NCBI GenBank assembly: GCA_965240325.2
Contig: OZ251232.1
Location: 1,922,001-1,986,000 of the forward strand
Direction: 5' to 3'
DNA: 64,000 bases
Source of the DNA: Rebecca billardiae RCC1528
Taxonomy: Eukaryota > Protista > Haptophyta
The notes below the pieces were generated by a model. That model was given only the letters and a program-made list of their open reading frames with translations, was not told where the DNA came from and searched no databases. A program made the translations under genes and the position numbers. Every line of letters starts with the position of its first letter. Position 1 is the first letter of the stretch. Below, piece by piece: positions 4,324 through 57,041 of this stretch.

Positions 4324-4398
<75 letters not shown>
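4309..4398. repeat. (GT)n-(TA)n compound microsatellite
   Basis: Directly visible: a short GT run followed by about 70 bp of TA. Confidence 0.97.
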
Positions 4399-4400
<2 letters not shown>

Positions 4401-4748
4401 GCCTATTTACTGATATAAATAGCCCAATTATTCAGGACGAAATCGGCCGGCGTATTCGCCTTCCCTGAGTCGGGGCACGGCCTGAGAGTGCCAGCAGTGA
4501 CTACTCAGTCTCAGTACTCCGACCTCGGACACTGACAAGTGACAGCTCCGCGAGTAGTCCGTACTCGCGGGTGCTGTGGTCCGGGCGCACACGACCCCTC
4601 CCGGACTCTCACCGGTGCGCGGCAGTTTGTGGCGGTGCGTACCGGTACGCACCGGTACGCACCGGTACGGTATTTACCGGTGTCCGGTGTACCGTCTTGG
4701 AGCCCTGGCGATGAAGGATGGCGCGGCAACCTGCCACCGTGAGCCTTA

Positions 4749-7062
4749 GGGCCATTCTGGACCCGGCGGAAAAATTTCCGCCGAGGGTATTCGGGGTAAA
4801 AGCCCGTTTTTTCTTGCCGGCATAGCTATGCCGGCAAAAAGTAACGAGCGTTTGGAAAAAATCTCAACTCGACCCCCAGATGAGATTTTTGCCGTATGTA
4901 CTACTATGGAAATTGTAAGCTCTATCTGGCGACCTGTCCTTTGTGAAGCCGAAGTTGGGGGGTCGTCGGAACCCGCCCCGCGGTACTGGGCTGCCCCGGC
5001 CGGCGCCGATCATGGTGTCCCGCCGCCGCACCCGCCCCGCTGCCCCGTGAGCTGGAGCGCGCGGGTGGGAACGGTGCGATCGCGGGTCCACCTTCCCCCA
5101 CACCAAGCGATGTGCTGCGATTCGCTTTCCTCCGTGGTCACCAAGCGCGCGCACGCTCCTGCTCTTGCGCCTCCGCGCCAAATGCGCAGATGTGCGACCG
5201 CACGCGACAGCGTACGCTGACGCTGCATCAGGGCTTGAAGTACGCACTGGTACGGCATAATGCTCTGATTGCGCATACGCCGCGCTTTGCCCCCGCGCGC
5301 GTTACCGTCATCGTGACGTGCATGCGCATCCGGAGGCATCGAGGAGTGAATCGGCACGAGAGCATGATGTTCACCCTTTTCTTGCGGCGTCGCCAGATGC
5401 CGTTCGCGGTGCCAGTGCGCGCGCCCACGTGCCCCGGCTTTTTGTTATCCACGCGCTACTCAGAAGCCTACGCCGCTTGGTGCTCCCCCTGCACGGGCAT
5501 CAGCGTGCTGGCCTTCGTGCCACTCCCAAGGCCAGACGTGCGACTCAGATGGGGCGAATGCGCGACACGCCTTGTTTGTTACCTGTGATGGCATGTACGT
5601 TGAGCACTCGACGTGCGGCTAGCGCGATTGGTGCTCATTAGGAGTCTTGCGGTGGAGAGCAGTCCAGAGCCTAAGTTGCCAGCGCTTACATCTACACCAC
5701 CCCTGATCGCGCGTGACAACTCTCAGCCTCAGGCTGTAAAATGTCATGCTGTGCACTCATGCCAGCTCATCTACTCAACGTCTCACGCCAAAGGGCGTTT
5801 GGCCGCGACTGCGGCTCAGCGCTGGCGACTTTGCCCGGACGTGAGCAAACGTACATTCGCCCCCACAACCGCGCCGGCGCCATTCAAGATGCGCTCGTGC
5901 CGACCCACTGTCAGTGCTCTAGTAGCTCACTGAGGACGTGCTCGCGCTTTTCATGCCGACACCAGTGTGCATTGAGCTAGGCGCTCTTGTCACTCGCGCG
6001 CGCAAGAGCGAAGTGAGTACGTACAAGGCCTGGCCAGAGACAAGGGCGGTAAGGGCTGTCAACTCCGAGTGGCGCCGAGTGGCGGAGGTTGGGCGCCCCT
6101 CAACTCGTGCGGCCTCGCGGCGCAGCGGCTAAGTCTCCTGGGGCGCAGCCCTGGAGGGCGCGTGGGGTGCGCACGCCGCGTGCTCCTGCGGCCGCGGCAG
6201 CGGCCGCGGACACGGCGCGCGTGGTTGGTCGTATCATCTGGCGCGAGGCGGCATGACGCGCGCCCATCATACGTGAGCCTCGCCCCGGGCGCGCGCCCGA
6301 CCCGCGCCGACCGCACAGCTCACCGCGCGCGCGCCGGCGGCTGGCGCGTGGCCACGGCTGGCTCTTGGTGCGGCGCGCGTGCGCGGCTGGCCTGAGGCGC
6401 GGCGAGGGCGCCGGCAAGCGCGGCGCGCGGCGTGAGAGGGTACTACGTGCTGTCTAGCAGGTGACCAACCACGCGCGCCGTGTCCGCGGCCGCTGCCGCG
6501 GCCGCAGGAGCACGCGGCGTGCGCTTCCCCACGCGCCCTCCAGGGCGGCGCCCCAGGAGACTTAGCCGCTGGGCCGCGAGGCCGCACGAGTTGAGGGGCC
6601 CAGAACCTCCGCCACTCGGCGCCACTGGGAGTTGACAGCCCTTACCGCCCTTGCCAGAGATCAGGTGTGGGAGCGCTGCACGCTGCTGCAAAGCCGTGCC
6701 TGGTGCCACATCTGCAAGTTGGCTGCCGTCCTCGCCGTGCTCGAGCACTTCGCCCAGCGCTAGCGCCCAGCGCGCAAGCACGCCCTTGACCCGCTCACAC
6801 GCGCATGGCTCGCGCCGTGCGCCTCGCCGCTGCCCATCGCGACAGGTGTCTCCGGGCGGTGCGTGGGCGGCGCTTGCAGCACGGGCGATGGCTGATGGCG
6901 TTCTGCGACGAGCCCTGTTGCGACATCGGTCCGCGTCCTATGAGCTCGCGTTCGATCTCGCGACCTGTAAGTCGTTTCGTACGCGAACCGTCGGCCCAAA
7001 AAAACGGGCTTTTACCCCGAATACCCTCGGCGGAAATTTTTCCGCCGGGTCCAGAATGGCCC
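4749..7062. mobile_element. Non-autonomous PIF/Harbinger-like transposon, 64-bp TIR, TTA TSD
   Basis: TTA|GGGCCATTCTGGACCCGGCGGAAAAATTTCCGCCGAGGGTATTCGGGGTAAAAGCCCGTTTTTT at 4749-4812, with its reverse complement at 6999-7062 followed by TTA. GGGC ends with a TWA TSD are typical of PIF/Harbinger. No transposase ORF seen. Confidence 0.85.
6041..6653. mobile_element. P/Galileo-like MITE nested in the Harbinger element, about 190-bp TIRs, 7-bp TSD CCAGAGA
   Basis: CCAGAGA|CAAGGGCGGTAAGGGCTGTCAACTCC...GGGAGTTGACAGCCCTTACCGCCCTTG|CCAGAGA; arms at about 6041-6230 and 6463-6653. Confidence 0.85.
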
Positions 7063-9142: not shown

Positions 9143-11389
9143 TACTACTTATAGAAATCTTATAGGAAATGTCTTGATGCATTATAATCAAACTGCCATG
9201 TAAACGGGTGTGGTTCCATGGTTCCAATATTTTGGAGTTTGCGCTGAGGCTTGGACTCCAAATATTGCAGAAGTCTCCATTGGTCTTTGGTGAATCTACT
9301 AGTGAGACCGGGCTCGGGCTTACGCCAACTTCGCCCTTCTTCGTTACCCAGGGGAATAGGTGGTAACACCTTTTCCTTATAGGGTTCGGCCCCTCCGCTA
9401 TCGCTTCGGAAGGTTACGCTCGGTGCAGTTGCTCCTTCGCTACCCTCACCCTATTTTTCTAGGTGGGCCCACTGGCTACTGTGGGATTATAGTGGCGCAG
9501 AGCGCGAGCTCATAGCGCGGTGTTTACTTTCGTCTCGAGCTGGATTCGACCACTGGATTCCAGCCCCAGGAGATGGCCCCTGGCCTGCCTGGTAAAAAAA
9601 ACAGTGGTACATGCTGCCGTAAATATAGGGCGTAACGGTGACCCTATTTACTTATTGGAAGTGGACTGTGCCCAATGTAACGACCATGTAACGGGCGTCT
9701 TAAACGTGACATATAGGGTCGGCAGACGTCACTTTGATATAGCACTTTGATCATTTGATGGTCTGATCATAGGTCTTCAGCAGCATGCACACCCATCATT
9801 GTCACATGTACGGCGTATATGGGCACTCTGAGAATACGGGATAACGGCCGTTACACCCGTGCGTTACATATACACCGCCATGCTGATCAGCATGGCTGCC
9901 ATAGTATTTCAGACTGTAGTTTCAGACTGCTCTCGTAGCAGCCGTACGGCGTGCATGTGATACCTAATATTTTTTCCAACCCTTCTACCCTCGATGGATG
10001 AGTCTTGAGGAGCCGTGGGCAAAGATTGAGCCGCATCGAGTCGTGGCGCCAGCCCTCCTGCCGTGCTCAAGGCAAGCAGGAGTGGTGCACGCGGCGCCGG
10101 GCACATCCAGCAGCCCGCACTGGCCGCAGCGTGAACACGGACAAGGTTCGTCGAGCACTCATCTGTGGTCGCGTGGCGTTCAAGGCAGGCGGCACTGCTA
10201 TGCATCGAAACGCCTTTCCTCATGACCCGACCTAACCGTTGCTCTACACTGCGACCAAGCTGTGTCCGAGCTGTCCTCAGCTCGACCGTCCTCTGCCTAA
10301 CTGTGTGCAACGGCCGCTTCGTCACAGCGCCGAGCTGGCTCGCCGTGGTGCGCGCGCGCGCGTAGCGATGTGCATTCATCACCGCTTCCTGCGTGGCAGC
10401 AGGGCGAGACATGGCTCGTCAGTAAGCGGGTACGCCTGCCGACCGTGCATCGGCATCGGCGGCGTCACCAACGTGCTCGGGCAGGCTCACGAAGGGCTCA
10501 AATCACTTGTGAACGGATCAACTGTACTGTCCGCAGCGAGCACGGCGCACAGCGGATGACCAAGCAGAGGCGGGGCGACGGCTGTGCGGCCGCGCGGGGG
10601 AGTAGCTGGGCTATCGAGGTACACGTAGAGCCACGACAGGGCTCAACAAGCGCATCAGCTGCGATCTACCCGGTCTGATGTGCAGCCCGACCTCGTGCAA
10701 TTGTGTGGCTCGAGGCCCTTAAAGGGGCTCGTAGCTTCCAAACACCCGAGGAGCGTCGGCGCTGAGGGTTGAGTCGAGGCCGGGGAGGTAAGAGACGGCC
10801 TACGCATCCACTTTGACCGTGGTATGACAATCAGATCCTTCCCCAAGTGCCCACGATGATGTGCGAGGCCACCTCGCCCAAGCGTACCGCCCTCATCCGT
10901 CGGGGACCTGACCGACGGGGGCAGTCTCCACAGGGCCGCAGAAGTAGCTGGGCCTTGCCAGGACACCATGTAGACGCTGTCCCAGTTACGTCCCGGAGTG
11001 TGCCAGTTCGTTCAAGGGTGTCCCAAGCTCGCGTTGTGCACGCATTACAATCCCCAAAGCTGTTCCCGTGTTTGAACGCGCGACTGTCGACGAGAGATGG
11101 CCAACCGGGAAGATGGCCCAGGGATGAACCGTTCGCATGGCTCGTTCCAGAGTGTGAGGTGTGAGATCGTGGTCGGCCCAGAGCTTCAGCAGCTTTGGGC
11201 TCCAGGGGGTACCGAGGACGAGGCGCTGAAGCTGCTAGGGGTCGGCCCTGCGATCGCCAACGTCGCGGACGCTCTCGCCGCCGTGATGCGTGCCACTTGG
11301 CGCGTGAGGCGGCTGAGGAAGGCACATGTGTGTACCGCAGCAGCCTTCCAGAGTCTGAGTGCCGCAGAGGCTGGACGACACCCTTACGC

Positions 11390-11420
11390 CAAAGGACCAT
11401 CGGTATTTGATGGTCCTTTG
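11390..11420. mobile_element. 31-bp mini-element or probable P-type excision footprint, 7-bp TSD CTTACGC
   Basis: CTTACGC|CAAAGGACCATC-GGTATTT-GATGGTCCTTTG|CTTACGC. The empty site with a single CTTACGC is at 16838-16844 and in the other two tandem units. Confidence 0.85.
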
Positions 11421-12169
11421 CTTACGCGCACGCGCGCGCGCATTTGCATCGGGAGTCGCATACAGGCCGCGGCACCGGTCCACCGCACCTGCACTCGCGC
11501 CCCCCGTCGTCAGGCCAGCGCTCCTCGCTCTCGCGGCGCTGAGTCCTTTGTGAGAGCGACCCACCCAGTGGCACGTGCTGTTGGCAGCCGTGCACTGTAG
11601 TGCCGCTAAGTGCCGTGTGTGTACGAGGTAGCCATCCGCTGACCGACACACGCTTTCGTGCGCATCGGCTGAGGCGACTGTTCGCCCGCATTCCGCCGCC
11701 TCCTCTCGTCTGTCGCGTGACCCACCTGCACAGCTCCACCACAGCTCGCACGTGTGCGGAGGCTGCTGATGGGCGGAGTGCCGCCCACTTGCGCGCTGGT
11801 CCGCTGACTGCGTGGCGTGATACCGTGCCTGAGATGCGCCTCACTCGAGCGCTCCTCTTGCTCGGCAGCAGTGGTCGATGAGTGAAACAGCCAGACGCCC
11901 ATTGAATGCATCGGCATGTGTTTGTGACGGCAGGGCGTGTGCGCACCGCTACCGCCTCACTGAGCCCAGGTCTGACGGCGTGCGCTTTGCCTGCGGCGGA
12001 GGGTCACTGTCGTCGCCTGTCGTCACAATCACGGCACGACGACAGTGATTTCGAAGCGCCGAGCGCGCGACGACGAGCAGGCGTAACCGATTCAGCCACT
12101 ACAGTCGACGGATCTCACGTCTGTAGCCGAGACATGATGTCCCTGGCCGAGCGCCCAGCTGTATCAGAC

Positions 12170-14283
12170 CAAAGGAATGAAAGAGAGATAGGACGGCAAC
12201 TCCAGTGACCGAGGTCATGCGAAAGACGCCATCGTGCGGGGGGCCGCAGCCCGCTGAGCCGAGGCGCAAGCCGGGGCCGCACCCTCCCTCCTGCTCCCGG
12301 GCGCCGCTCCGCCACGGGCGTGCACGCCGCGAGTTCGACGCGCGCGGCGCTGCCATGCTGCCGACGCTTCGACCGGATCGTCGACCGGCTGCCGCCGCGC
12401 CCGCGCCCGCCGCCGAGCCCACCGGGTGCGCCACGCGCTGCGCGGCATGCGCGGGCGCCGAACTGACCGGCGCCGCCGCGAGCGCCCGCACGAGGGGCGA
12501 GAGAGTGGCAATTTCGCGGGTGTTAAGGTTTGAATGTGGGGTTGGGCCAATCAAGCTCCCATACAGACCTTAACACCCGCGAAAATGTCCCCAGACCGTG
12601 CGCTCACGACGCGCGTATGCTACCTGCCTGGGTGCAATGAAGCTGGTTGTGCACCTCTGCGAGCGCCGTCGCCCAAGTCGAGAGAGCGGATATTTCGCGG
12701 GTGTCTTTGTTTGGGCAGTGCCCCGTGTTACTACTCTCGGCATACACGCCCAAAGACCCGCGTTCTAGACCACAGGGCGCGAGCAGACCACGACGCGCAC
12801 ACGCTGCGCGCCTTGGCACAATGCACCTGGCCATGCGACGCCCGTGCGAGCGTCGTCCGAGGCGAGAGAGGGGGCGATTCGCGGGTGTCTTTGCTTCTTT
12901 GGAGGGTTGTGCCCATGCCCTTGGCACGCAGACCTTAACACCCGCGGTTTGTCCGAAGACCGCGCGCTCACGACAGCGCGCGCGCGCTGCGCGTCGTAGT
13001 CAAGCGAATGCAGACTGCCTAGCCCCAACCAGCGTTCGGCACTGGCGGATATCGACGACGATGCTGAGTCGCGGTCGGACAGAGACGATGGCAGTCACCT
13101 GGGTCAGATTGCAGCCGCTAGAGTCGGCACATACAACAGAGGCTTCGGACTAGGTGCTAGGCAGCGTGCGCAACGATGATGTTCGGTCTATGAAGTGATC
13201 GCGCCTAGCGACTACTGTCCCGCCCGTGATGATAATACCCTGGGCCACTCGGTTGCATCATGCCATTCATGGCATCGCGGTGGATATGAATGGCACGCGC
13301 ATGATGTCTCCGGCAGGTTTCCTTGAAGATGATACGAGCATCTGCCTGCGTTGGGCGACGCTCTCTAGGCTCTAGCGCGTTCAAGGATGGCGCAGTTGCT
13401 GTTGGCAGTGCTTGCAGCTAGCCGAGTCCTCCATGACGCGCAGCGCGCGCACGCTGTCGTGAGCGCGCGCTGTCGTGAGCGCGCGGTCTTCGGACAAACC
13501 GCGGGTGTTAAGGTCTGCGTGCCAAGGGCATGGGCACAACCCTCCAAAGAAGCAAAGACACCCGCGAATCGCCCCCTCTCTCGCCTCGGACGACGCTCGC
13601 ACGGGCGTCGCATGGCCAGGTGCATTGTGCCAAGGCGCGCAGCGTGTGCGCGTCGTGGTCTGCTCGCGCCCTGTGGTCTAGAACGCGGGTCTTTGGGCGT
13701 GTATGCCGAGAGTAGTAACACGGGGCACTGCCCAAACAAAGACACCCGCGAAATATCCGCTCTCTCGACTTGGGCGACGGCGCTCGCAGAGGTGCACAAC
13801 CAGCTTCATTGCACCCAGGCAGGTAGCATACGCGCGTCGTGAGCGCACGGTCTGGGGACATTTTCGCGGGTGTTAAGGTCTGTATGGGAGCTGGATTGGC
13901 CCAACCCCACATTCAAACCTTAACACCCGCGAAATTGCCACTCTCTCGCCCCTCGTGCGGGCGCTCGCGGCGGCGCCGGTCAGTTCGGCGCCCGCGCATG
14001 CCGCGCAGCGCGTGGCGCACCCGGTGGGCTCGGCGGCGGGCGCGGGCGCGGCGGCAGCCGGTCGACGATCCGGTCGAAGCGTCGGCAGCATGGCAGCGCC
14101 GCGCGCGTCGAACTCGCGGCGTGCACGCCCGTGGCGGAGCGGCGCCCGGGAGCAGGAGGGAGGGTGCGGCCCCGGCTTGCGCCTCGGCTCAGCGGGCTGC
14201 GGCCCCCCGCACGATGGCGTCTTTCGCATGACCTCTGCCCGCGCCGCACTGGGAGTTGCCGTCCTATCTCTTTCATTCCTTTG
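12170..14283. mobile_element. Galileo/P-like foldback element, about 825-bp TIRs, 7-bp TSD ATCAGAC
   Basis: ATCAGAC|CAAAGGAATGAAAGAG...CTCTTTCATTCCTTTG|ATCAGAC; arms at about 12170-12995 and 13435-14283; internal ACACCCGCG motifs in both orientations; empty site at 17578-17584. Confidence 0.9.
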
Positions 14284-15652
14284 ATCAGACTGACCACTAT
14301 CACCGACTACGATGATCCTCCTTTTCCTCCCTCTCTTCTTCCCCCTCTCTTCTCCCTCCTTCCCTCCTCCCCCTCCTTTTTCCTCCCCTCTCCTTTTTTC
14401 TGGCGCGAGTTTACAAAACAGCGGGGGCCTGGCGGCCTTGTCCCGGTGGGGCTGGTCGAACACAGCGCGTCTAGGACGCGACCGAGAAGCTTGCCAGGGC
14501 CGGCAGACCCGACGACGATGGGACGAGTTGGTCGTTCAGCGCTGACTACCCGTATACCGGTATCACCCGTATCATCCGGTGGCGCGCACGGCGCGCGCGC
14601 GGCGCAGCAGCGCGGCACCGCACCGCCACCGCGCTCTGCAAGGCCCATCGAGACGCCGGCGAGGCGCGCGTCGATGCAGTCGTCGCTGCGCACGGCCGCT
14701 CGGGCACACGCACCGCGGATGGCCCACCGGTCTGCAGGCGGTGGCTGCTGCAGGCGCGGGGCGAGCGGCGCAGGGCACAACCTGCACGGCAGCGTAGACT
14801 TGCAGCCGTCGCTGAGCACGGCCCGTTGGGCACGACGTGGTACGAGCGGCTCGCGTCGGTGCGCATGTTGTGTTGTGCAGCTCGCGCCGGCGGGCACGCA
14901 CCTCCAGGATGGCGCCGCGCGCCGCGGGCGGCGCGGGTGACGGCTCGAAGGCCGCGCCCGTTGATGACGAGCCAGCGCTCCGCGTGTAGCGTAGTCAAGT
15001 CGGGCATTATTAGTCGGAGAGGGGGTGGCTTATGGTAGGCTTGTGGTACGAGCTTCTCCATCAGGCCGTTCGTGCACGTCATCTGATGCGGTTGCGGCTG
15101 CTTGATCGTGGCCACGTGCCGCTGGATCTCCGCCAGATCGGCGCAGTACCTCGCGCCGCCGACGATGGCATCTGGCGCTGGGTTCGCCAGAGGCCCGCGG
15201 AGCTGATCCTCGTGCGAGCGCGAGTGCCGGCAGCGTCGTCGAGCCACGCCGGGTGAGCGCCATTCTGCGTGTCGCGCGCGGCCTTCGCCTCCTGCAGTAG
15301 CGCGCTCGTTCGTCATACTCAATCGTGTGTGCCGAGCGCACGCGGCGCGGCGGCGAAAGCACTCGTGCGTCGCGGTTCCGCCTCGACTTGGGGAGCGATG
15401 GTCGTAGAAAAGCGTCAACAAATAGGTGGGAATCGCAACGACGTCCCTATGGCGCGCGCTCAAAAAGGTAACGACATGCGTTCTCGATTCCCGCGGCGCG
15501 CCTAATCAAAAAACGTTTGAGGCCCCATTCTTCGTATTCCTACTCCGGTATTACTCTCCCCATCAGTACGTCACAACCAATTAAAGGGGGTCGGAGCTGG
15601 GTCTCCCAGGGCTTTGTCACGAATTAAAATTGTTTAAAGCTGTGTTCACCAG

Positions 15653-18600
15653 AATAACTCCACCAGCATATGGACAATTTGCCCCGCCGCCGGGTGGCTA
15701 CTAGGGCATGCTGGTGGACTCTTTGGGCTGTCCGGAAGGGCTTGGGCAGGACTTTTACTTATTGGGCTATCTTTTGGCTCACATAGGACTTCAGACTGCC
15801 ATCTTTTGGCTCAGCCAATGGTTGCACGAGTTGGCGGAGGCCTCGTGGCGACAACGCCCTTGGCCCTCGTTGACTCCCCTCCTCCGGCCCTCGCACTTGG
15901 TCGCTGACGATGGCGCCCGGCGAGGGGTTCAAACTCCCTCAGACCGCGCGTGGGAAGCGACCTCAAGGCGCGTTTGGCAACGCACGATCGACGCTAAACG
16001 CCGTGGCATCGCGTGCATCACTCCGACTGGCACATATGCACGTGTCGGCAGGGGACGCGCCTGACCACCCACGTGGCGTCTGACAGCTCACGTTGCTGAC
16101 TTCTCAGCGGCGGCCGTATCTCGTGTCGCCATGCCGGCCGCGGCAGATGCGGGGCGCCGTGGCGTTGCCCTTTCCCGACGACGTGACGCACACACGCGCG
16201 CCCGCGTGCACGCTCGGCGGCGCGCGGCACACCTACGCCGCCAGTACGCGCGGCCCTCGGCGGCCACCGCTGCAGCCAGCGGTCGGCGACGCGGGTGATG
16301 GGTAGACGCGCACCGCAATCTCAGCTGCGAGCGCGCGGCCTCTGTGGCGCCAGCAGTGCCGAACGCGCCGCCCGCCGCCGCGCCGCACAGCGCACCGCCT
16401 GCCGTCGCGTGCCTAGCCGCGGCCGCCCTCGCGCGCGCCGACAGCCGCGGCGCTGCGCAGCTTGTCGCGGCGGCGCTGGGCGCATGGCTGAGAGGCGCGA
16501 TCAGCAGCGGATTTGCGAGAGCAAGCACACCGTGGAGCAAGGGACCATGCACGTACGACCGCGCTCGCGAAGCAGGCCCCTGCTGCACGGTAGGTGAGTG
16601 TGAGATCGTGGTCGGCCCAGAGCTTCAGCAGCTTTGGGCTCCAGGCGGTACCGAGGACGAGGCGCTGAAGCTGCTAGGGGTCGGCCCTGCGATCGCCAAC
16701 GTCGCGGACGCTCTCGCCGCCGTGATGCGTGCCACTTGGCGCGTGAGGCGGCTGAGGAAGGCACATGTGTGTACCGCAGCAGCCTTGTACCGCAGCAGCC
16801 TTCCAGAGTCTGAGTGCCGCAGAGGCTGGACGACACCCTTACGCGCACGCGCGCGCGCATTTGCATCGGGAGTCGCATACAGGCCGCGGCACCGGTCCAC
16901 CGCACCTGCACTCGCGCCCCCCGTCGTCAGGCCAGCGCTCCTCGCTCTCGCGGCGCTGAGTCCTTTGTGAGAGCGACCCACCCAGTGGCACGTGCTGTTG
17001 GCAGCCGTGCACTGTAGTGCCGTGTGTGTACGAGGTAGCCATCCGCTGACCGACACACGCTTTCGTGCGCATCGGCTGAGGCGACTGTTCGCCTGCATTC
17101 CGCCGCCTCCTCTCGTCTGTCGCGTGACCACCTGCACAGCTCCACCACAGCTCGCACATGTGCGGAGGCTGCTGATGGGCGGAGTGCCGCCCACTTGCGC
17201 GCTGGCCGCTGACTGCGTGGCGTGATACCGTGCCTGAGATGCGCCTCACTCGAGCGCTCCTCTTGCTCGGCAGCAGTGGTCGATGAGTGAACTGTGAAAC
17301 AGCCAGACGCCCATTGAATGCATCGGCATGTGTTTGTGACGGCAGGGCGTGTGCGCACCGCTACCGCCTCACTGAGCCCAGGTCTGACGGCGTGCGCTTT
17401 GCCTGCGGCGGAGGGTCACTGTCGTCGCCTGTCGTCACAATCACGGCACGACGACGACAGTGATTTCGAAGCGCCGAGCGCGCGACGACGAGCAGGCGTA
17501 ACCGATTCAGCCACTACAGTCGACGGATCTCACGTCTGTAGCCGAGACATGATGTCCCTGGCCGAGCGCCCAGCTGTATCAGACTGACCACTATCACCGA
17601 CTACGATGATCCTCCTTTTCCTCCCTCTCTTCTTCCCCCTCTCTTCTCCCTCCTTCCCTCCTCCCCCTCCTTTTTCCTCCCCTCTCCTTTTTTCTGGCGC
17701 GAGTTTACAATAACTCCACCAGCATGGACAATTTGCCGCCGGGTGGCTACTAGGGCATGCTGGTGGACTCTTTTGGCTGTCCGGAAGGGCTTGGGCAGGA
17801 CTTTTACTTATTGGGCTATCTTTTGGCTCACATAGGACTTCAGACTGCCATCTTTTGGCTCAGCCAATGGTTGCACGAGTTGGCGGAGGCCTCGTGGCGA
17901 CAACGCCCTTGGCCCTCGTTGACTCCCCTCCTCCGGCCCTCGCACTTGGTCGCTGACGATGGCGCCCGGCGAGGGGTTCAAACTCCCTCAGACCGCGCGT
18001 GGGAAGCGACCTCAAGGCGCGTTTGGCAACGCACGATCGACGCTAAACGCCGTGGCATCGCGTGCATCACTCCGACTGGCACATATGCACGTGTCGGCAG
18101 GGGACGCGCCTGACCACCCACGTGGCGTCTGACAGCTCACGTTGCTGACTTCTCAGCGGCGGCCGTATCTCGTGTCGCCATGCCGGCCGCGGCAGATGCG
18201 GGGCGCCGTGGCGTTGCCCTTTCCCGACGACGTGACGCACACACGCGCGCCCGCGTGCACGCTCGGCGGCGCGCGGCACACCTACGCCGCCAGTACGCGC
18301 GGCCCTCGGCGGCCACCGCTGCAGCCAGCGGTCGGCGACGCGGGTGATGGGTAGACGCGCACCGCAATCTCAGCTGCGAGCGCGCGGCCTCTGTGGCGCC
18401 AGCAGTGCCGAACGCGCCGCCCGCCGCCGCGCCGCACAGCGCACCGCCTGCCGTCGCGTGCCTAGCCGCGGCCGCCCTCGCGCGCGCCGACAGCCGCGGC
18501 GCTGCGCAGCTTGTCGCGGCGGCGCTGGGCGCATGGCTGAGAGGCGCGATCAGCAGCGGATTTGCGAGAGCAAGCACACCGTGGAGCAAGGGACCATGCA

Positions 18601-21600
18601 CGTACGACCGCGCTCGCGAAGCAGGCCCCTGCTGCACGGTAGGTGAGTGTGAGATCGTGGTCGGCCCAGAGCTTCAGCAGCTTTGGGCTCCAGGCGGTAC
18701 CGAGGACGAGGCGCTGAAGCTGCTAGGGGTCGGCCCTGCGATCGCCAACGTCGCGGACGCTCTCGCCGCCGTGATGCGTGCCACTTGGCGCGTGAGGCGG
18801 CTGAGGAAGGCACATGTGTGTACCGCAGCAGCCTTGTACCGCAGCAGCCTTCCAGAGTCTGAGTGCCGCAGAGGCTGGACGACACCCTTACGCGCACGCG
18901 CGCGCGCATTTGCATCGGGAGTCGCATACAGGCCGCGGCACCGGTCCACCGCACCTGCACTCGCGCCCCCCGTCGTCAGGCCAGCGCTCCTCGCTCTCGC
19001 GGCGCTGAGTCCTTTGTGAGAGCGACCCACCCAGTGGCACGTGCTGTTGGCAGCCGTGCACTGTAGTGCCGTGTGTGTACGAGGTAGCCATCCGCTGACC
19101 GACACACGCTTTCGTGCGCATCGGCTGAGGCGACTGTTCGCCTGCATTCCGCCGCCTCCTCTCGTCTGTCGCGTGACCACCTGCACAGCTCCACCACAGC
19201 TCGCACATGTGCGGAGGCTGCTGATGGGCGGAGTGCCGCCCACTTGCGCGCTGGCCGCTGACTGCGTGGCGTGATACCGTGCCTGAGATGCGCCTCACTC
19301 GAGCGCTCCTCTTGCTCGGCAGCAGTGGTCGATGAGTGAACTGTGAAACAGCCAGACGCCCATTGAATGCATCGGCATGTGTTTGTGACGGCAGGGCGTG
19401 TGCGCACCGCTACCGCCTCACTGAGCCCAGGTCTGACGGCGTGCGCTTTGCCTGCGGCGGAGGGTCACTGTCGTCGCCTGTCGTCACAATCACGGCACGA
19501 CGACGACAGTGATTTCGAAGCGCCGAGCGCGCGACGACGAGCAGGCGTAACCGATTCAGCCACTACAGTCGACGGATCTCACGTCTGTAGCCGAGACATG
19601 ATGTCCCTGGCCGAGCGCCCAGCTGTATCAGACTGACCACTATCACCGACTACGATGATCCTCCTTTTCCTCCCTCTCTTCTTCCCCCTCTCTTCTCCCT
19701 CCTTCCCTCCTCCCCCTCCTTTTTCCTCCCCTCTCCTTTTTTCTGGCGCGAGTTTACAATAACTCCACCAGCATGGACAATTTGCCGCCGGGTGGCTACT
19801 AGGGCATGCTGGTGGACTCTTTTGGCTGTCCGGAAGGGCTTGGGCAGGACTTTTACTTATTGGGCTATCTTTTGGCTCACATAGGACTTCAGACTGCCAT
19901 CTTTTGGCTCAGCCAATGGTTGCACGAGTTGGCGGAGGCCTCGTGGCGACAACGCCCTTGGCCCTCGTTGACTCCCCTCCTCCGGCCCTCGCACTTGGTC
20001 GCTGACGATGGCGCCCGGCGAGGGGTTCAAACTCCCTCAGACCGCGCGTGGGAAGCGACCTCAAGGCGCGTTTGGCAACGCACGATCGACGCTAAACGCC
20101 GTGGCATCGCGTGCATCACTCCGACTGGCACATATGCACGTGTCGGCAGGGGACGCGCCTGACCACCCACGTGGCGTCTGACAGCTCACGTTGCTGACTT
20201 CTCAGCGGCGGCCGTATCTCGTGTCGCCATGCCGGCCGCGGCAGATGCGGGGCGCCGTGGCGTTGCCCTTTCCCGACGACGTGACGCACACACGCGCGCC
20301 CGCGTGCACGCTCGGCGGCGCGCGGCACACCTACGCCGCCAGTACGCGCGGCCCTCGGCGGCCACCGCTGCAGCCAGCGGTCGGCGACGCGGGTGATGGG
20401 TAGACGCGCACCGCAATCTCAGCTGCGAGCGCGCGGCCTCTGTGGCGCCAGCAGTGCCGAACGCGCCGCCCGCCGCCGCGCCGCACAGCGCACCGCCTGC
20501 CGTCGCGTGCCTAGCCGCGGCCGCCCTCGCGCGCGCCGACAGCCGCGGCGCTGCGCAGCTTGTCGCGGCGGCGCTGGGCGCATGGCTGAGAGGCGCGATC
20601 AGCAGCGGATTTGCGAGAGCAAGCACACCGTGGAGCAAGGGACCATGCACGTACGACCGCGCTCGCGAAGCAGGCCCCTGCTGCACGGTAGGTGAGAGTG
20701 AGATCGTGGTCGGCCCAGAGCTTCAGCAGCTTTGGGCTCCAGGCGGTACCGAGGACGAGGCGCTGAAGCTGCTAGGGGTCGGCCCTGCGATCGCCAACGT
20801 CGCGGACGCTCTCGCCGCCGTGATGCGTGCCACTTGGCGCGTGAGGCGGCTGAGGAAGGCACATGTGTGTACCGCAGCAGCCTTGTACCGCAGCAGCCTT
20901 CCAGAGTCTGAGTGCCGCAGAGGCTGGACGACACCCTTACGCGCACGCGCGCGCGCATTTGCATCGGGAGTCGCATACAGGCCGCGGCACCGGTCCACCG
21001 CACCTGCACTCGCGCCCCCCGTCGTCAGGCCAGCGCTCCTCGCTCTCGCGGCGCTGAGTCCTTTGTGAGAGCGACCCACCCAGTGGCACGTGCTGTTGGC
21101 AGCCGTGCACTGTAGTGCCGTGTGTGTACGAGGTAGCCATCCGCTGACCGACACACGCTTTCGTGCGCATCGGCTGAGGCGACTGTTCGCCTGCATTCCG
21201 CCGCCTCCTCTCGTCTGTCGCGTGACCACCTGCACAGCTCCACCACAGCTCGCACATGTGCGGAGGCTGCTGATGGGCGGAGTGCCGCCCACTTGCGCGC
21301 TGGCCGCTGACTGCGTGGCGTGATACCGTGCCTGAGATGCGCCTCACTCGAGCGCTCCTCTTGCTCGGCAGCAGTGGTCGATGAGTGAACTGTGAAACAG
21401 CCAGACGCCCATTGAATGCATCGGCATGTGTTTGTGACGGCAGGGCGTGTGCGCACCGCTACCGCCTCACTGAGCCCAGGTCTGACGGCGTGCGCTTTGC
21501 CTGCGGCGGAGGGTCACTGTCGTCGCCTGTCGTCACAATCACGGCACGACGACGACAGTGATTTCGAAGCGCCGAGCGCGCGACGACGAGCAGGCGTAAC

Positions 21601-21838
21601 CGATTCAGCCACTACAGTCGACGGATCTCACGTCTGTAGCCGAGACATGATGTCCCTGGCCGAGCGCCCAGCTGTATCAGACTGACCACTATCACCGACT
21701 ACGATGATCCTCCTTTTCCTCCCTCTCTTCTTCCCCCTCTCTTCTCCCTCCTTCCCTCCTCCCCCTCCTTTTTCCTCCCCTCTCCTTTTTTCTGGCGCGA
21801 GTTTACAATAACTCCACCAGCATGGACAATTTGCCGCC
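15653..21838 (+). repeat. Tandem array of three near-identical 2049-bp units plus about 30 bp of a fourth
   Basis: ORF sets recur at +2049 (15708, 17757, 19806). AATAACTCCACCAGCAT starts at 15653, 17709, 19758 and 21807. Confidence 0.97.
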
Positions 21839-28166: not shown

Positions 28167-29636
28167 TCAGTCTGACTCGGTCATGACCTCCACTGCACGC
28201 CACTCAGTACAGTGCGGCTTGTGCACTTTCCACGCACTCAGCAGGTGCTCGCGGCAGCAGAAGACCGCCACGAGGCACCGCTTGCACTTCTTCACTCCAC
28301 GGCCAGACTTGGCGCACACCATGCAGCACGCAGTGGCCACCTCGCGATCTCCTGCATGGTCACAGAGCACCTTGCTCGGATCCACCACGGAGCCGTCAAG
28401 CCCCTGCCCGCTGCACAGCAGCTGCACTCCCTCCGTCACGTCGCGCTGCACTGCCTCGCCTGCAAGCAGCAGGAGCGCCAATGCCAAGTGGGCATGTGGC
28501 TGGCCACTGTCGATGGCCAGCCGGTACCAGCGCACTGCCTCCGCCATATCCTGCAGCGCACCGTCGCCTCCTGCGTAGCACCTGCCCAGGTTGTACTGTG
28601 CAACCGCATGGCCCTGCTCGGCCGCCCGCCGGTACAAGCGCACTGCCTCAGCCATTTCCTGGGGCACGCCCTTGCCTTGTTCGTAGCACAAGCCCAGGCT
28701 GGACTGTGCATCTGCATCACAGTGCTCGGCAGCTAGCCGGTACCAGCGCACCGCCTCGGCCATATCCTGTTGCACGCCCTCGCCTCGTTCGTAGCACCTG
28801 CCCAGGTTGTGCTGCCCACTTGCAGTGCCCTGCTCGGCCGCCAGCCGGTACCAGCGCACCGCCTCTGCCCAGTCCTGTGGCATGCCCTTGCCTTGTTTGT
28901 AGCACACGCCCAGGTTGATCTGTGCAGCTGCATTGCCCTGCTCGGCCGCCAGCCGGTACCAGCGCACTGCATCGACCCAGTCCTGCTGCACGCCCTCCCC
29001 TTGATCGTAGCACACGCCCAGGCTGTACTGCGCACCTGCATTGCCCTGCTCGGCCGCCAGCCGGTACCAGCGCACTGCCTCTGCCCAGTCCTGCTGCACG
29101 CCCTCACCAGCCTCACCTTGATCGTAGCACACGCCCAGGCTGTACTGCGCACCTGCATTGCCCTGCTCGGCCGCCAGCCGGTACCAGCGCACCGCCTCGG
29201 CCCAGTCTTGTGGCACGCCCATGCCTTGTTTGTAGCACACGCCCAGGTTGTACTGCCCACCTGCATTGCCCTGCTCGGCAGCGAGCCGGTACCAGCGCAC
29301 CGCCTCGGCCAAGTCCTGCTGCACGCCCTTGCCTTGTTTGTAGCACACACCCAGGTTGCTCTGTGCATCTGCATTGCCCTGCTCGGCCGCAAGCCGGTAC
29401 CAGCGCACTGCCTCGGCCCAGTCCTGCTGCACGCCCTCGCCTCGTGTGTAGCACACGCCCAGGCTGTACTGCGCACCTGCATTGCCCTGCTCGGCCGCCA
29501 GCCGGTACCAGCGCACTGCCTCGGCCCAGTCCTGCTGCACGCCAGCACCTTGATCGTAGCGCACGCCCAGGCTGTACTGCGCAGCTGCGTAGCCATGCTC
29601 AGCCGCCAGCCGGCACAGGCGCATCGCCTCGGCCAT
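28167..29636 (-). CDS. Sel1-like repeat protein with C-terminal MYND zinc finger (about 10-11 repeats; 5' end uncertain)
   Basis: 36-aa repeats AQYxLGVCYxxGxGVxQDxAEAVRWYRLAAEQG followed by CMVC..CKRC..FCCREH..WKVHKPHC. The ORF is open to 29801, but homology begins mid-repeat at the ATG at 29636, so an upstream exon or truncation is likely. Confidence 0.9.
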   Translation of the reverse strand: MAEAMRLCRLAAEHGYAAAQYSLGVRYDQGAGVQQDWAEAVRWYRLAAEQGNAGAQYSLGVCYTRGEGVQQDWAEAVRWYRLAAEQGNADAQSNLGVCYKQGKGVQQDLAEAVRWYRLAAEQGNAGGQYNLGVCYKQGMGVPQDWAEAVRWYRLAAEQGNAGAQYSLGVCYDQGEAGEGVQQDWAEAVRWYRLAAEQGNAGAQYSLGVCYDQGEGVQQDWVDAVRWYRLAAEQGNAAAQINLGVCYKQGKGMPQDWAEAVRWYRLAAEQGTASGQHNLGRCYERGEGVQQDMAEAVRWYRLAAEHCDADAQSSLGLCYEQGKGVPQEMAEAVRLYRRAAEQGHAVAQYNLGRCYAGGDGALQDMAEAVRWYRLAIDSGQPHAHLALALLLLAGEAVQRDVTEGVQLLCSGQGLDGSVVDPSKVLCDHAGDREVATACCMVCAKSGRGVKKCKRCLVAVFCCREHLLSAWKVHKPHCTEWRAVEVMTESD

Positions 29637-32186
29637 GAAGACCCTCACGCTCCTACAAGTGGGCAGCCTTGGGCGCCGGACGCTCATGATCAGAGTTACG
29701 AGGGGAGGGGGCAGCCGAAGGCCCAAGGCTTCTGAGACAAACGCGCGACGACCCCCCCGCCCCCTCCCTAAATAAAGGGTCGTTCTTCCGAGCCCCCGCA
29801 CGCGTTTCCCCCAGCCCGAGCCCGAACATTGTTGTATGAGGACCTATTGCGAGCGCGGGGGCGTGGAGGCCTCCCCAGGATGACGAAACTTTGTCGGGAC
29901 AAAGTGTTGTTGGAAATCCGAACAACACTTTGTCCCAACAAAATCTCGTCGCCTAACATCTCGTCCCGAAAGATCGCAGGACGGAAGCTTCTGTGCCTTC
30001 CAACGTCGGCCCACAAGAGGGCCGAGAGCATGCCGTGCGTGCGTGCGGCGGTCGGCGGGGACAAGTACGACCGGTGCGTTCGCGCGCGATCTCGTATGCT
30101 CGGCGGCGGTGGTGTTGCGGCTGGCCAGTCACATGTGATGCCTGGTTGCGCTCGCGTGCTTGAGCGCAGCTTGTGCTGCGCAAGCCTCCGTTGTGCAGAT
30201 CTGACGTGCACCTAATGCACTCTCCTCGCGCCGTGCACCTGGAGCGTTTGAATTCGTAGAAGATTTCGACTCAGCCACGATGCACACGGTCGTGCGTGTC
30301 TCCAGAAGACACTTACGAGCAGGGCTCGACCGTGGCATGCCCACCGTCTCCTCATATCATCTCGCTTAGCTGTCTGCGCACACGCGACCAGCTCCACCGT
30401 GCTCGGCTGTCGGCGCCCGCTTGCGCGGTCGGTCGGTGGGACACCTGGTTGCCTACATTGCACACACGAGCTTATCTGTGCCGCTCAAGTGTGCGTTGGC
30501 GCTCTGACTGCCGCCCCTCGCCGACATCGTGCGCACGAGAAGGGCCTGCACGTGCACGACAAGGACGCTAGGGTCGCGGGCTGCCCTCGCTGCTTCTCCT
30601 AGGCTACCTTGTGCCGATCCTCCCGCAATCTCAATACTGTAGCTACCGGCGCAACTCCAAAACGGAAAGGAAATGCTCGCAAGAACGCCAGCGGCCCCTC
30701 GTTTTGAGCCCGAACATTTTTCCGCGGGGGGGCACGTCCCGTAGCATCAAGGAGAGTCCGGAAATGGAATCCGGGGACGCTCGTCAACTCGCGGGGGGGG
30801 CCTGTTGACGGCCGCGCCGAGCACCCGAGCGTCTCGACCCGCGCCTCGCCTATACACGCGCATTTGGCGGGGCGCGCGCGGGGCGCGCTGCGAGTGGGCG
30901 CGTCGGCCCGTACGCTCGGAGCCCTCTTTCGGAAAAGTCCGAGCGCGCCGCGCCGCGCCCGTCGCGCCGCGCTGCGTCGTGCGCCGTGCACGCGTTCGGC
31001 TCGGCTCGGGTGCCGAGCGCCGCCGACGAGCGGGAAGAGCGCCAGGGGCGGGTGCGCTGGCGCGGGCGGGGTGTGGATGCACGATGTGGGAGTCTACCTC
31101 TCGTACCAGGCGCGCGCGCCCGCTCGGCGCCGTCGCTTCGCGCGGCCGTAGGCGTCCAAGCGTCGATGGTTGGCCTCGAGAACCGCTAGAAGGGGGGCCG
31201 CCAGCCGCAAGCGACGCGGGTAACGATTGACGAGACCGAGCACGCATCTGACAAAGATCTGACAAGACCGAATACGTGGCACAGCAGGTGTGCACCCAGC
31301 ACCGCCGCCCCACGCCCCCACGCGCAACAGCCCCCCGCATGGAGGCTCGATGGCCAGCGCCGCCCCCGCGCTCTGCGGCCGCGCGCCGCGCGCACATCAG
31401 GCGGGGCGCGCGCGAAGTCCGCCGCGCGTGGGGGCCTCGGGCCCCCGGGAGAAGCAAGCGCGGCATCACCGCGCCGCGCCCGCGCCACGGCATGCGTCCA
31501 ACGACCCAGTCCCAGGTGCGACCGCGCACTGCCGTGCGCTGCGCGCAACTGGCACTGGGGCGGATGGTCATGGTGCGCGCCGCGCGCGCGGGGGCTGCAT
31601 GTGCAGGCGGGCGGTGGTTGCCCGGCTCGCTCGGTGCGCGCGCGCGTCGCCCTGCGTTACGCTCTGAACTCTTTGTGCGCGCGCGGTGCGGATGCTGCAC
31701 GAGTTGAGCCCGACGGTGCTTAGTGGTCTTGGTCCACTCACCACTGTCTCGCCGCGCCAGCACGTTGCGGCTGCAGCAGCCGCAGCTCACTGGACCATTG
31801 ATGCCAGGTGTCACGGCAGGGAAGCGGAAGGAGCGCGCCACCTTAACGTGCGGCTCGTTAGCTGGAGGCGCCCTGGTCGGACGCACTACTGTACAGACGC
31901 CCGTGGCCGTGCGGCCGCGTGAGGCGAGGGCAGGTGCCGTGACCACTGAGTCACAGGTCTGGCCAGGCTGCAGCGCCGCACGATGAACCCGGCTGGTCGT
32001 CACGCATGGGCACATCGTCAGTCTCCTCATCAGATGCCCGGTTGCTAAGTTGGTCACTGTCCGACTGTTCGATTCAGACACTGAGACTCAGAGTAGTAGC
32101 CGCAGTCACCCGTGGGTGTTGATGGTCAGAGGCGGATATCGTTTGCGTAGCACGGCCGGGCCGCGGATCCTTTTCCTCGAGTTATA

Positions 32187-36409: not shown

Positions 36410-38014
36410 ATGGCGGGCGATGCCGGCATCCGCATGCTCCGGCGCGCGGCGGGGCGGGGCGACGCACGTGCGACCTTCCTGCTGGCGAGGCGCACCGAAT
36501 CGGGCGACGGCGTCGCGCAGGACGTCGACGAGGCGCATCGCCTCTATGCCATCGCAGCGAATCACGGGTTTGTACAAGCGCAGCAACGTTTGGGCGAGAT
36601 CGAGATGGCCGCGGAGAATTGGGCAGAGGCTGCGCGCTGGTACTGGCTGGCTGCTGAGCAGGGCGATGCAGCTGCGCAATACACCATGGGCTTGTGCTAC
36701 GACCGAGGCGAGGGTGTGCAGCAGGACTTGGCCGAGGCGGTGCGCTTGTACCGGCTGGCGGCCGAGCAGGGCTACGCAGCTGCGCAGTACAGTCTAAGCA
36801 GGTGCTACGAACTAGGTGAGGGCGTGCCGCAGGATATGGCCGAGGCGGTGCGCTTGTATCGGCTGGCGGCCGAGCAGGGCTACCCAGCTGCGCAGTACTG
36901 CCTGGGCAGGAGCTACGCACTAGGCGAGGGCGTGCAGCAGGACTGGGCAGAGGCGGTGCGCTTGTATCGACTGGCGGCAGAGCAGAGCGATGCATTTGCG
37001 CAGCACGGCCTGGGCGAGCTCTACGAACGAGGCGAGGGCGTGCCGCAGGATATGGCCGAGGCGGTGCACTGGTATCGGCCGGCTGCCGAGCAGGGCTACG
37101 CAGCTGCGCAGTATGACCTGGGCGTGTGCTATGCAACAGGCGAGGGCGTGCAGCAGGACTGGGCAGAGGCGGTGCGCTGGTACCGGCTGGCGGCCGAGCA
37201 GGGTTTCGCAGCTGCGCAGACTAACCTGGGCGTGTGCTACGAACGAGGCAAGGGCGTGCCGCAGGATATGGCGGAGGCGGTGCGCTCTTACCGGCTGGCG
37301 GCCGAGCAGGGCTACGCAGCTGCGCAGTACGACCTGGGCGTGTGCACCGCAGGAGGCAATGGCTTGCCGCAGGATATGGCCGAGGCGGTGCGCTGGTACC
37401 GGCTGGCGGCAGAGCAGGGCTTCACAGCTGCGCAGTACAACCTGGGCGTGAGCTACGACCGAGGTGAGGGCGTGCAGCAGGATAAGGCAGAGGCCATGCG
37501 CTTGTACAGGCTGGCAGCAGAGCAGGGCTCTGCAGCTGCGCAGTACGACCTGGGAGTGTGCTACGAAGGAGGCGAGGGCGTGCTGCAGGATATGGCCGAG
37601 GCGGTGCGCTGGTACCGGCTGGCCATCGACGGCGGCCAGCCACATGCCCACTCTGCATTGGCGGTCCTGCTGCTTGCAGGCGGGGCTGTGCAGCGCAACG
37701 TGGCTGAGGGAGTGCTGCTGCTGCGCCTTGGGCACGAGCTTGACAGCTCAACGATCAATCCTAGTGAGGTGCTTGGCGACTATGCTGGAGACCACGAGGT
37801 GGCCGCTGCATGCTGCATGGTGTGCGCCAAGTCGGGCAGTGGCGTGAAGAAGTGCAAGCGGTGCCTAGTGGCTGTCTTCTGCTGTCGTGAGCATCTGCGG
37901 AGCGCGTGGAAATTGCACAAGCCGCACTGCACTGCGTGGCGCGACGCGGCGGCGGTGATGACTTCAGCTGCTAATCAGACAGAGGCTGCTGCCGACGATA
38001 AGAACTGCTCGTGA
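36410..38014 (+). CDS. Sel1-like repeat protein with C-terminal MYND zinc finger (about 12 repeats)
   Basis: Uninterrupted ORF (open from 36386, first ATG at 36410) of Sel1 repeats ending in CMVCAKSGSGVKKCKRCLVAVFCCREHLRSAWKLHKPHC; paralogue of the gene at 28167. Confidence 0.92.
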   Translation: MAGDAGIRMLRRAAGRGDARATFLLARRTESGDGVAQDVDEAHRLYAIAANHGFVQAQQRLGEIEMAAENWAEAARWYWLAAEQGDAAAQYTMGLCYDRGEGVQQDLAEAVRLYRLAAEQGYAAAQYSLSRCYELGEGVPQDMAEAVRLYRLAAEQGYPAAQYCLGRSYALGEGVQQDWAEAVRLYRLAAEQSDAFAQHGLGELYERGEGVPQDMAEAVHWYRPAAEQGYAAAQYDLGVCYATGEGVQQDWAEAVRWYRLAAEQGFAAAQTNLGVCYERGKGVPQDMAEAVRSYRLAAEQGYAAAQYDLGVCTAGGNGLPQDMAEAVRWYRLAAEQGFTAAQYNLGVSYDRGEGVQQDKAEAMRLYRLAAEQGSAAAQYDLGVCYEGGEGVLQDMAEAVRWYRLAIDGGQPHAHSALAVLLLAGGAVQRNVAEGVLLLRLGHELDSSTINPSEVLGDYAGDHEVAAACCMVCAKSGSGVKKCKRCLVAVFCCREHLRSAWKLHKPHCTAWRDAAAVMTSAANQTEAAADDKNCS

Positions 38015-52640: not shown

Positions 52641-52741
52641 CCGCTGCCAAGCGCTGCCAAGCACGGTAACTCGGTCGCGTTGGCCGCCGATGGCGAACAA
52701 AACGCCGACGAGAATCTCATCACATCTACAGCCTGCATATA

Positions 52742-53549
52742 GTACCCCTCAGGTTTAAGCGTTCGCTTCGCTGGCTACGTGATTGCACGCCCGCTCACGC
52801 CGTGACGAGCGCACCATGGCGGCTCTCTCGCTCGTGGCGCACGGTCGGGGAGCACCCGCGTCTGCGCAGACACACGGCTCGCCCGCACGTGTGCTGTGTC
52901 GCGCACGCGCGCGCTCGCGCGGCCGGCCATCGCGCACAGACCTGACTGGTCTCACATGCACCAGCATGGTCGTGCACGCACAGCGCCGCTCCGCGCACGC
53001 AATAAATTCGAGCGTGGTGCGCATGCACGTACACTCTGTGTCCCTGGTCCACACACAGCGTGTGAGCTCGTGCTTTGACCACGTGCAGGCGCACCACAGA
53101 CTTTCGCGCAGCTGCCGCGCCGGGCCGTGCCAGCGGCTCGACAGGCTCAGCTCGTGGGCAGCGCTCGCTCGATTGCATGCTCCTGCCGCGCAGGGTGCCC
53201 AGCTTGCTGCGCTCGGTGTGTACTGGCGCGCTCGGACGGCACCCCGCGTACGCCTCGGGCCACGCGTGGGAGCCTAGCTCCACGCACGGAGGACTCGCAG
53301 GCGCAGGCCGGCGGCTGCCTCACACGGCTTGGTCGGGAGGCCGCCGCGCGGCTACCGTCGAGCTCGCCGATCGGCTGCACCTACTTTCAGCGCACGCTAC
53401 CGCCGCCTCGCGCACGACACGGCAAGGTTGAACACGTGACTGTGGGCGGGCATCAGCCCCAAGTACGCAGCCATCAGCACCACGGCCTTCACCTTCAGCG
53501 CCGACGATAGAGCCGCCGCTTGATTTTATCGCTTAAACTTGAGGGCCAC
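52742..53549. mobile_element. 808-bp MITE, 20-bp imperfect TIR, TA TSD (Tc1/mariner-like); copy 1
   Basis: TA|GTACCCCTCAGGTTTAAGCG...CGCTTAAACTTGAGGGCCAC|TA; empty site CCACT-TA-AGTCGG at 63211-63223. Confidence 0.85.
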
Positions 53550-56233: not shown

Positions 56234-57041
56234 GTACCCCTCAGGTTTAAGCGTTCGCTTCGCTGGCTACGTGATTGCACGCCCGCTCACGCCGTGACGA
56301 GCGCACCATGGCGGCTCTCTCGCTCGTGGCGCACGGTCGGGGAGCACCCGCGTCTGCGCAGACACACGGCTCGCCCGCACGTGTGCTGTGTCGCGCACGC
56401 GCGCGCTCGCGCGGCCGGCCATCGCGCACAGACCTGACTGGTCTCACATGCACCAGCATGGTCGTGCACGCACAGCGCCGCTCCGCGCACGCAATAAATT
56501 CGAGCGTGGTGCGCATGCACGTACACTCTGTGTCCCTGGTCCACACACAGCGTGTGAGCTCGTGCTTTGACCACGTGCAGGCGCACCACAGACTTTCGCG
56601 CAGCTGCCGCGCCGGGCCGTGCCAGCGGCTCGACAGGCTCAGCTCGTGGGCAGCGCTCGCTCGATTGCATGCTCCTGCCGCGCAGGGTGCCCAGCTTGCT
56701 GCGCTCGGTGTGTACTGGCGCGCTCGGACGGCACCCCGCGTACGCCTCGGGCCACGCGTGGGAGCCTAGCTCCACGCACGGAGGACTCGCAGGCGCAGGC
56801 CGGCGGCTGCCTCACACGGCTTGGTCGGGAGGCCGCCGCGCGGCTACCGTCGAGCTCGCCGATCGGCTGCACCTACTTTCAGCGCACGCTACCGCCGCCT
56901 CGCGCACGACACGGCAAGGTTGAACACGTGACTGTGGGCGGGCATCAGCCCCAAGTACGCAGCCATCAGCACCACGGCCTTCACCTTCAGCGCCGACGAT
57001 AGAGCCGCCGCTTGATTTTATCGCTTAAACTTGAGGGCCAC
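56234..57041. mobile_element. 808-bp TA-TSD MITE; copy 2
   Basis: Matches 52742-53549 at +3492; flanks CCACT-TA and TA-AGTCGG match the empty site. Confidence 0.85.

Follow-up and report, generated by a model that had tools for sequence, protein, structure and literature searches.

A 31-bp insertion between two copies of CTTACGC, lying in a 64,000-bp stretch of the haptophyte Rebecca billardiae RCC1528 (contig OZ251232.1, positions 1,922,001 to 1,986,000 of the forward strand; this whole stretch is called the window here, and its own numbering is used), is very probably the excision scar of a transposon family that we call family A. An original prediction had taken this insertion for a footprint of the type left by the Drosophila P element, and it is supported by the longer parental copies and the remnants with variable centres that were found genome-wide. 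It is also probable that the element was released by a cut located about 19 nt inside its end, as judged from a sharp limit in the terminal sequence that the scars retain. We regard family A and its relatives as non-autonomous foldback-type members of a P/Galileo-like group, an assignment based on target length, target motif, foldback architecture, footprint geometry and the presence of one unlinked P-like gene in the genome, on C21.

The insertion, its empty paralogous sites and its parents

Direct reading of window 11383-11427 revealed two CTTACGC copies enclosing 31 bp, in which a 7-nt centre separates a 12-nt arm from its reverse complement. The earlier statement that CTTACGC stands on both sides of this insert and only once in three paralogues was exact by 17-mer search, alignment and BLAST (Basic Local Alignment Search Tool). 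A 17-mer ending in CTTACGC occurs four times in the window (11373, 16828, 18877 and 20926), and the copy at 11383 differs there from the three paralogous units solely by 38 extra bases, which correspond to the 31-bp insert and a second 7-mer (alignment and BLAST). The paralogous units form a tandem array at 15686-21832, with three units of 2049 bp that are 99.9-100% identical and whose open frames gave no Pfam match. A diverged, interrupted copy of the same unit was located at approximately 11154-14419 by BLAST of unit 15686-17734 against the window, with identities of 93-97%. This diverged copy is broken twice, by the 31-bp insert and by a 2114-bp element 750 bp downstream (12170-14283; family B below), and the flanking alignments overlap by 7 bp at each break. 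The features of the insertion and of its empty counterparts are as follows.

11383..11389, + strand: left copy of the 7-bp target-site duplication CTTACGC; the paralogous units hold the 7-mer once
11390..11401, + strand: retained left tip of family A (12 nt), the same as nt 1-12 in the long copies L032 and L033; the match to the terminal repeat ends before nt 13
11402..11420, + strand: retained right tip of family A (19 nt), the same as the final 19 nt in the long copies
11421..11427, + strand: right copy of the duplication CTTACGC; the paralogous units hold the 7-mer once
16838..16844, + strand: paralogous empty site with a single CTTACGC (17-mer search and alignment)
18887..18893, + strand: paralogous empty site (17-mer search and alignment)
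20936..20942, + strand: paralogous empty site (17-mer search and alignment)

With three paralogous empty sites, the observation is far beyond chance. Within the 64-kb window the 12-mer of the arm was found at two places only, both in the insert and inverted with respect to each other, compared to 0.08 matches expected per shuffle.

The search was then extended to the genome (72 Mb in 41 contigs), where the 12-mer occurs 118 times and its reversed control not once. Seven of the 118 ends belong to long copies, three of them complete and one truncated.

C10:1705170-1707728: complete family-A copy
C13:2608784-2610905: complete family-A copy
C21:945155-947680: complete family-A copy
C5: truncated family-A copy, one end

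A longer parental element had been anticipated, and these four copies, of about 2.1 kb, carry the ends in question. The terminal sequence assigned to the parent had to be corrected, as the 12-mer is followed by AAATACC and not by GGT. The ends of the long copies are identical for at least 33 nt, starting with CAAAGGACCATCAAATACC and running on into the conserved block TAGGAnnnnAACTC, and two long copies are flanked by exact 7-bp duplications (GGGCGGC and GTGAGAC). The basic element measures about 2.1 kb, with inverted arms of about 600 nt around an unrelated centre (arms measured at 259 and 315 nt with 98-100% complementarity, in addition to the 33-nt tips). Long inverted arms hence constitute most of a non-coding element, as in foldback transposons, and the open frames in L032 and L033 gave no Pfam match. 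The C10 copy contains a nested repeat of about 430 bp (L031:542-968), which has more than 40 genome copies at 74-99% identity and is also present at window 4398-4707.

Compared with these parents, the insert is composed of 12 nt of one family-A end bluntly joined to 19 nt of the other, instead of the 15-16 nt from each end that had been proposed, and its apparent loop GGTATTT corresponds to nt 13-19 of the right end. An identical 31-mer was detected at one other genome site, C20:1724258 (L085), where the duplication is GCCGCGG.

Remnants and the limit of terminal retention

All 118 sites of the 12-mer were parsed, and removal of the long copies and of two segmental duplicates left 94 remnant sites, which were classified according to the 7-mers at their borders.

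Exact 7-bp duplication: 46 sites
Duplication with one mismatch: 13 sites
No recognisable duplication: 35 sites

Control 7-mers displaced by 20 bp had a partner in 2 of 110 cases. Remnants with variable centres, which had been predicted at 28-34 bp, were therefore common, but their lengths proved much more dispersed, mostly 12-49 bp, with a few longer ones (total range 12-121 bp). Palindromic scars of 12-49 bp should be annotated in this genome as transposon remnants and not as regulatory hairpins. The duplication was 7 bp long at the window site, at the 46 remnant sites and at two long copies. A target logo built from 48 sites read G/C-T-N-N-N-A/G-C/G, with G in 29 and C in 15 sites at position 1, T in 36 at position 2, A in 25 and G in 17 at position 6, and C in 26 and G in 16 at position 7; the three central positions were GC-leaning.

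Junctions were analyzed in the 43 exact-duplication remnants of up to 60 bp. In 24 of them both ends of the element were represented, and these were joined bluntly (12 cases), through 1-2 nt of microhomology (5) or with 4-24 nt of filler (7). The other 19 were one-ended, and ten of these consisted of the duplication, a number of nucleotides from one tip and the duplication again, with nothing else. Filler of templated appearance was present in remnants L017, L047, L063 and L076. Apart from the 31-mer, some remnant sequences, few in number, were each present at two or three sites. The scars in this way record the end-joining repair of the alga, mostly blunt or with 1-2 nt of microhomology and with occasional templated filler. 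A one-ended family-A scar also lies inside another repeat in L001.

For each of the 111 remnant ends with the 12-mer or more, retention was counted as the length of the uninterrupted match to the terminal repeat.

12 nt: 18 ends
13 nt: 16 ends
14 nt: 17 ends
15 nt: 8 ends
16 nt: 14 ends
17 nt: 8 ends
18 nt: 8 ends
19 nt: 13 ends
20 nt: 6 ends
21 nt: 3 ends
22-44 nt: 0 ends

All 111 ends stop at or before nt 21, despite terminal repeats that match for at least 33 nt, and among the longest retention lengths (17-21 nt) the commonest was 19 nt. A 27-mer search allowing three mismatches recovered only the long copies and one chance extension. The inner block common to families A and B begins at nt 20, directly after the retained part, and its nt 20-33 are missing from all remnants; this block is likely the recognition part of the terminal repeat. 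That none of the 111 ends passes 19-21 nt, in repeats matching for 33 nt or more, suggests that the cut is staggered and lies about 19 nt within the element. The P-style stagger foreseen for this lineage is hence favored by the sharpness of the limit, which falls however at 19 (to 21) nt and not at the 17 nt of the Drosophila enzyme.

From these natural scars we infer the following course of events. A family-A cut-and-paste transposon would have entered the diverged copy of the 2-kb repeat, duplicating CTTACGC, and would later have been excised. The transposase would cut the transferred strand exactly at the boundary between element and target and the opposite strand at a distance of about 19 nt into the element, in such a way that each donor flank would keep a 3' overhang of about 19 nt of element sequence. 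End joining would subsequently trim, fill and ligate the two overhangs, and at the window site 12 nt of the left tip would have been bluntly joined to all 19 nt of the right tip, leaving 31 bp between intact target copies. The best candidate for the enzyme, which would act in trans, is the product of the genome's only P-transposase-like gene. Such a stagger accounts for a hard limit of retention together with variable joins that are mostly blunt or of 1-2 nt microhomology. Moreover, as clipping of a single-stranded overhang would stop at the duplex boundary, one-ended scars with untouched duplications are also accounted for.

Several observations weigh against this interpretation. As many as 35 of the 94 remnants lack a duplication, which could reflect flank loss during repair. 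Only remnants with an intact 12-mer entered the census, so shorter scars went uncounted and the low end of the retention distribution is censored. Nine of the 22 ends reaching 19 nt also match nt 20 and three match nt 21, whereas chance would give about five and one, respectively, somewhat below the numbers observed, and the cut could thus be positioned anywhere from 19 to 21. In addition, no autonomous family-A copy was found in the genome.

An excision scar left by an enzyme outside the P group, hAT-like or unclassified, that also cuts with a long stagger is an explanation we consider rather unlikely. The CAAAG tip does fit the hAT terminal motif YARNG, hAT targets likewise show a preference for T as the second base and for A close to the end, and the P-like gene is physically unlinked to any such terminal repeat. 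Nevertheless, excision by hAT, Mutator and Transib enzymes passes through hairpins on the flanking DNA, and the resulting scars contain no element tips, whereas the scars described here keep tips of up to 19 nt; the duplication is of 7 bp, as in Galileo, and not of the 8 bp typical of hAT; and, to our knowledge, a long 3' stagger has so far been demonstrated biochemically only for the Drosophila P element.

A very unlikely origin of the remnants is internal deletion, through aborted gap repair or through collapse of the palindrome by hairpin cleavage and rejoining, with no staggered cut involved. The parents of families A and B are indeed near-perfect palindromes (arms of about 600-770 nt, 98-100% complementary), structures that are unstable, and some remnants carry templated-looking filler. 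Breakpoints should however be spread along the arms, and not a single end falls at 22-44 nt; the 27-mer tip is kept only by the complete long copies and the truncated C5 copy; and palindrome collapse would hardly yield one-ended remnants in which both duplications are intact.

The proposal that the 31-bp palindrome moves on its own as a minimal mobile unit, being a micro-MITE (miniature inverted-repeat transposable element) inserted here with a 7-bp duplication, is scarcely credible and was rejected, for the identical 31-mer at L085 and the few other recurrent remnants are expected from only about 20 x 20 junction combinations, the 31-mer has just these two identical copies among remnants that differ in length and centre, 19 of the 43 short remnants carry a single tip and would not be transposable as a unit despite their flanking duplications, and the likely recognition block is absent from all of them.

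A candidate transposase, sister families and other repeats

A six-frame scan of the genome with the model of the P-transposase RNase H N-terminal domain (PF21787) detected one locus, C21:1533970-1534365, within a single-copy, uninterrupted frame of 1317 amino acids (L037:5843-9796, - strand). The shorter C-terminal RNase H model (PF21789) also hit this frame only, at 18 bits, below its cut-off. The sole Protein Data Bank match of the protein was the Drosophila P transposase (6p5a), a weak one (E = 0.2), under whose alignment lie the motifs SD.PHLIK..RN and D..EH.FG, which we take to be P/THAP9 signatures. Its nearest language-model clusters were P-transposase families (0.96, with 217 shared features). 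The N-terminal half of the protein is long, of low complexity and rich in Ala, Gly and Pro, and a single-sequence AlphaFold model of the catalytic region was too poor for use (mean predicted local distance difference test score of 39).

Whether this gene moves the elements was weighed against less favorable results. The PF21787 match is modest (32 bits for a cut-off of 24.6 bits). A Pfam scan of the frame with E values up to 0.01 returned PF21787 alone, with no THAP domain, although the protein may have a DNA-binding domain that is divergent or of another type; a guanosine triphosphate (GTP)-binding insertion domain was likewise not detected by Pfam. No terminal repeats or duplication were found within about 10 kb of the gene, where BLAST self-comparison, a search for 10-mer inverted repeats with duplications, inspection for CA..G tips and analysis of repeat architecture gave GC-rich noise only. 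Word searches yielded no homologues, and a metagenome scan gave 40 pattern matches with no true relative among them. The link between gene and elements, which depends on this being the only P-type gene of the genome, is circumstantial. That the gene encodes the enzyme in question is a real possibility that stops short of an even chance, and it is plausible as a stationary source of transposase. A search of metagenomes for the terminal-repeat architecture produced 20 single matches, all without an inverted partner and judged to be due to chance.

An 11.4-kb stretch with family-A tips (L034+L051, G000:C10:221012-232411) was considered as an autonomous copy and discarded, because its 2322-amino-acid frame is helicase/Helitron-like and not a DDE transposase. 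The stretch is bounded by 15-16 nt of each family-A tip, with the 7-mer TCTGAAC on both sides. Its frame contains DUF6570 and PIF1-like AAA_30/AAA_19 domains and looks like a Helitron-type Rep/helicase by these domain matches, the part examined being all of the stretch but the last 1.7 kb. The simplest reading is that a large element inserted into the A/T-rich centre of an old family-A scar. The end of this element is found 7-9 nt from another family-A remnant in L070, and not in L142.

Two further families with related ends are represented in the window.

12170..14283, + strand: family B, intact non-coding foldback of 2114 bp with duplication ATCAGAC; 773-nt arms, 100% complementary; site empty in the three tandem units
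6041..6653, + strand: family C, 613-bp element with CAAGGG ends and duplication CCAGAGA; terminal repeats matching at 20/20 positions

The family-B element and the family-A scar, separated by only 750 bp, thus share the diverged repeat copy, and the perfect 773-nt arms of the former give it the same foldback architecture as family A. Alignment of A and B ends revealed a common plan, with CAAAGG at nt 1-6, family-specific sequence up to nt 19 and TAGGAnnnnAACTC at nt 20-33. Family C has only the CAAGGG tips and an AACTC core in common with them, at shorter spacing. The corresponding 12-mer of family B had 56 matches in the genome, including four 2.1-kb copies plus variants, and the other sites, as in family A, were short remnants that did not exceed about 20 nt, several of which lie within exact 7-bp duplications. 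In family C a genome-wide search gave no two-ended scar having 12-nt arms, and for none of the three families was a coding copy found. A 6.4-kb composite (L139:501-6930; G000:C38:661336-667765) has a different family-B tip variant at each border, with an exact 7-bp duplication, GTTCAAT, around it, and its left end includes one complete family-B foldback of 2 kb. Its open frames gave no Pfam match; it may represent a macro-transposon mobilised through two non-sister ends.

The window also contains two arrays of 108-bp tandem repeats, at 28343-29731 and 36507-37778, each lying within a long open frame and the two frames being on opposite strands, and, at 52740-63847, three or more tandem copies of a 3492-bp unit that has an internal repeat of about 400 bp.

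Comparison with known P-superfamily transposons

The elements described here share with the P superfamily a target-site duplication in the 7-8 bp range and a palindromic target of the GT...AC type; long staggered cleavage of the donor, as deduced from the natural scars, would be a third common trait. In Drosophila, a stretch of each terminal repeat is kept at the donor site after excision of the P element, which is explained by a 17-nt staggered cut (PMC7776569). Family A resembles this element in its cut-and-paste behavior, in scars that keep a stretch of each end and in a palindromic GC-flanked target. Mobilisation of non-autonomous copies in trans would be a further point of likeness, and the genome of the alga has one gene with a P-type RNase H N-terminal domain. 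The two systems differ in the duplication (7 bp here, 8 bp in Drosophila), in the retention limit (19, to 21, nt compared to 17), in the length of the inverted ends (arms of about 600 nt compared to a 31-bp terminal repeat) and in the lack of a detected THAP domain in the candidate enzyme.

Galileo, a member of the P superfamily, generates 7-bp duplications with the consensus GTANTAC and has foldback-like long terminal repeats (PMC4168063). The likeness of families A and B to Galileo and 1360 comprises the 7-bp duplication, the palindromic GT...AC target and the very long foldback-like terminal repeats, and, as in Galileo, many copies lack a transposase segment. As background, 1360 also makes 7-bp duplications. 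In contrast, there is no sequence similarity to Galileo, whose targets are AT-rich whereas the centre of the family-A target is GC-leaning. In the literature searched we found no description of excision scars or cleavage geometry for Galileo.

Mobilisation of non-coding elements by a P-type transposase encoded elsewhere has precedents. The MITE BuT5 is reported to be moved in trans by the transposase of a divergent P element (PMC3698922), and zebrafish Pdre2 is a non-coding element whose P-type transposase, THAP9, is encoded at another location (PMC10983969). The arrangement proposed for the alga would be of the same kind. The partners of BuT5 and Pdre2 were reportedly identified by experiment or by shared terminal repeats, whereas the candidate presented here has no repeats in common with the elements. 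No published description of P-superfamily elements in haptophytes was found in a search that did not extend to Repbase reports.

No mechanistic trait of the P-element transposase is odder than its 17-nt staggered cut. The genome analyzed here, far outside animals, offers about 94 natural donor-site scars, together with a ready pair of substrate and candidate enzyme for testing. More tentatively still than the link to the gene itself, we propose that the single-copy, domesticated-looking C21 gene still mobilises at least two or three families of non-coding foldbacks, cutting about 19 nt inside their ends, and that, if so, the long 3' stagger would be ancestral to the whole P superfamily. The sharp retention limit of the scars, the 7-bp GT...AC targets and the Galileo-like foldback build suggest that a long stagger may be old and widespread in this superfamily.

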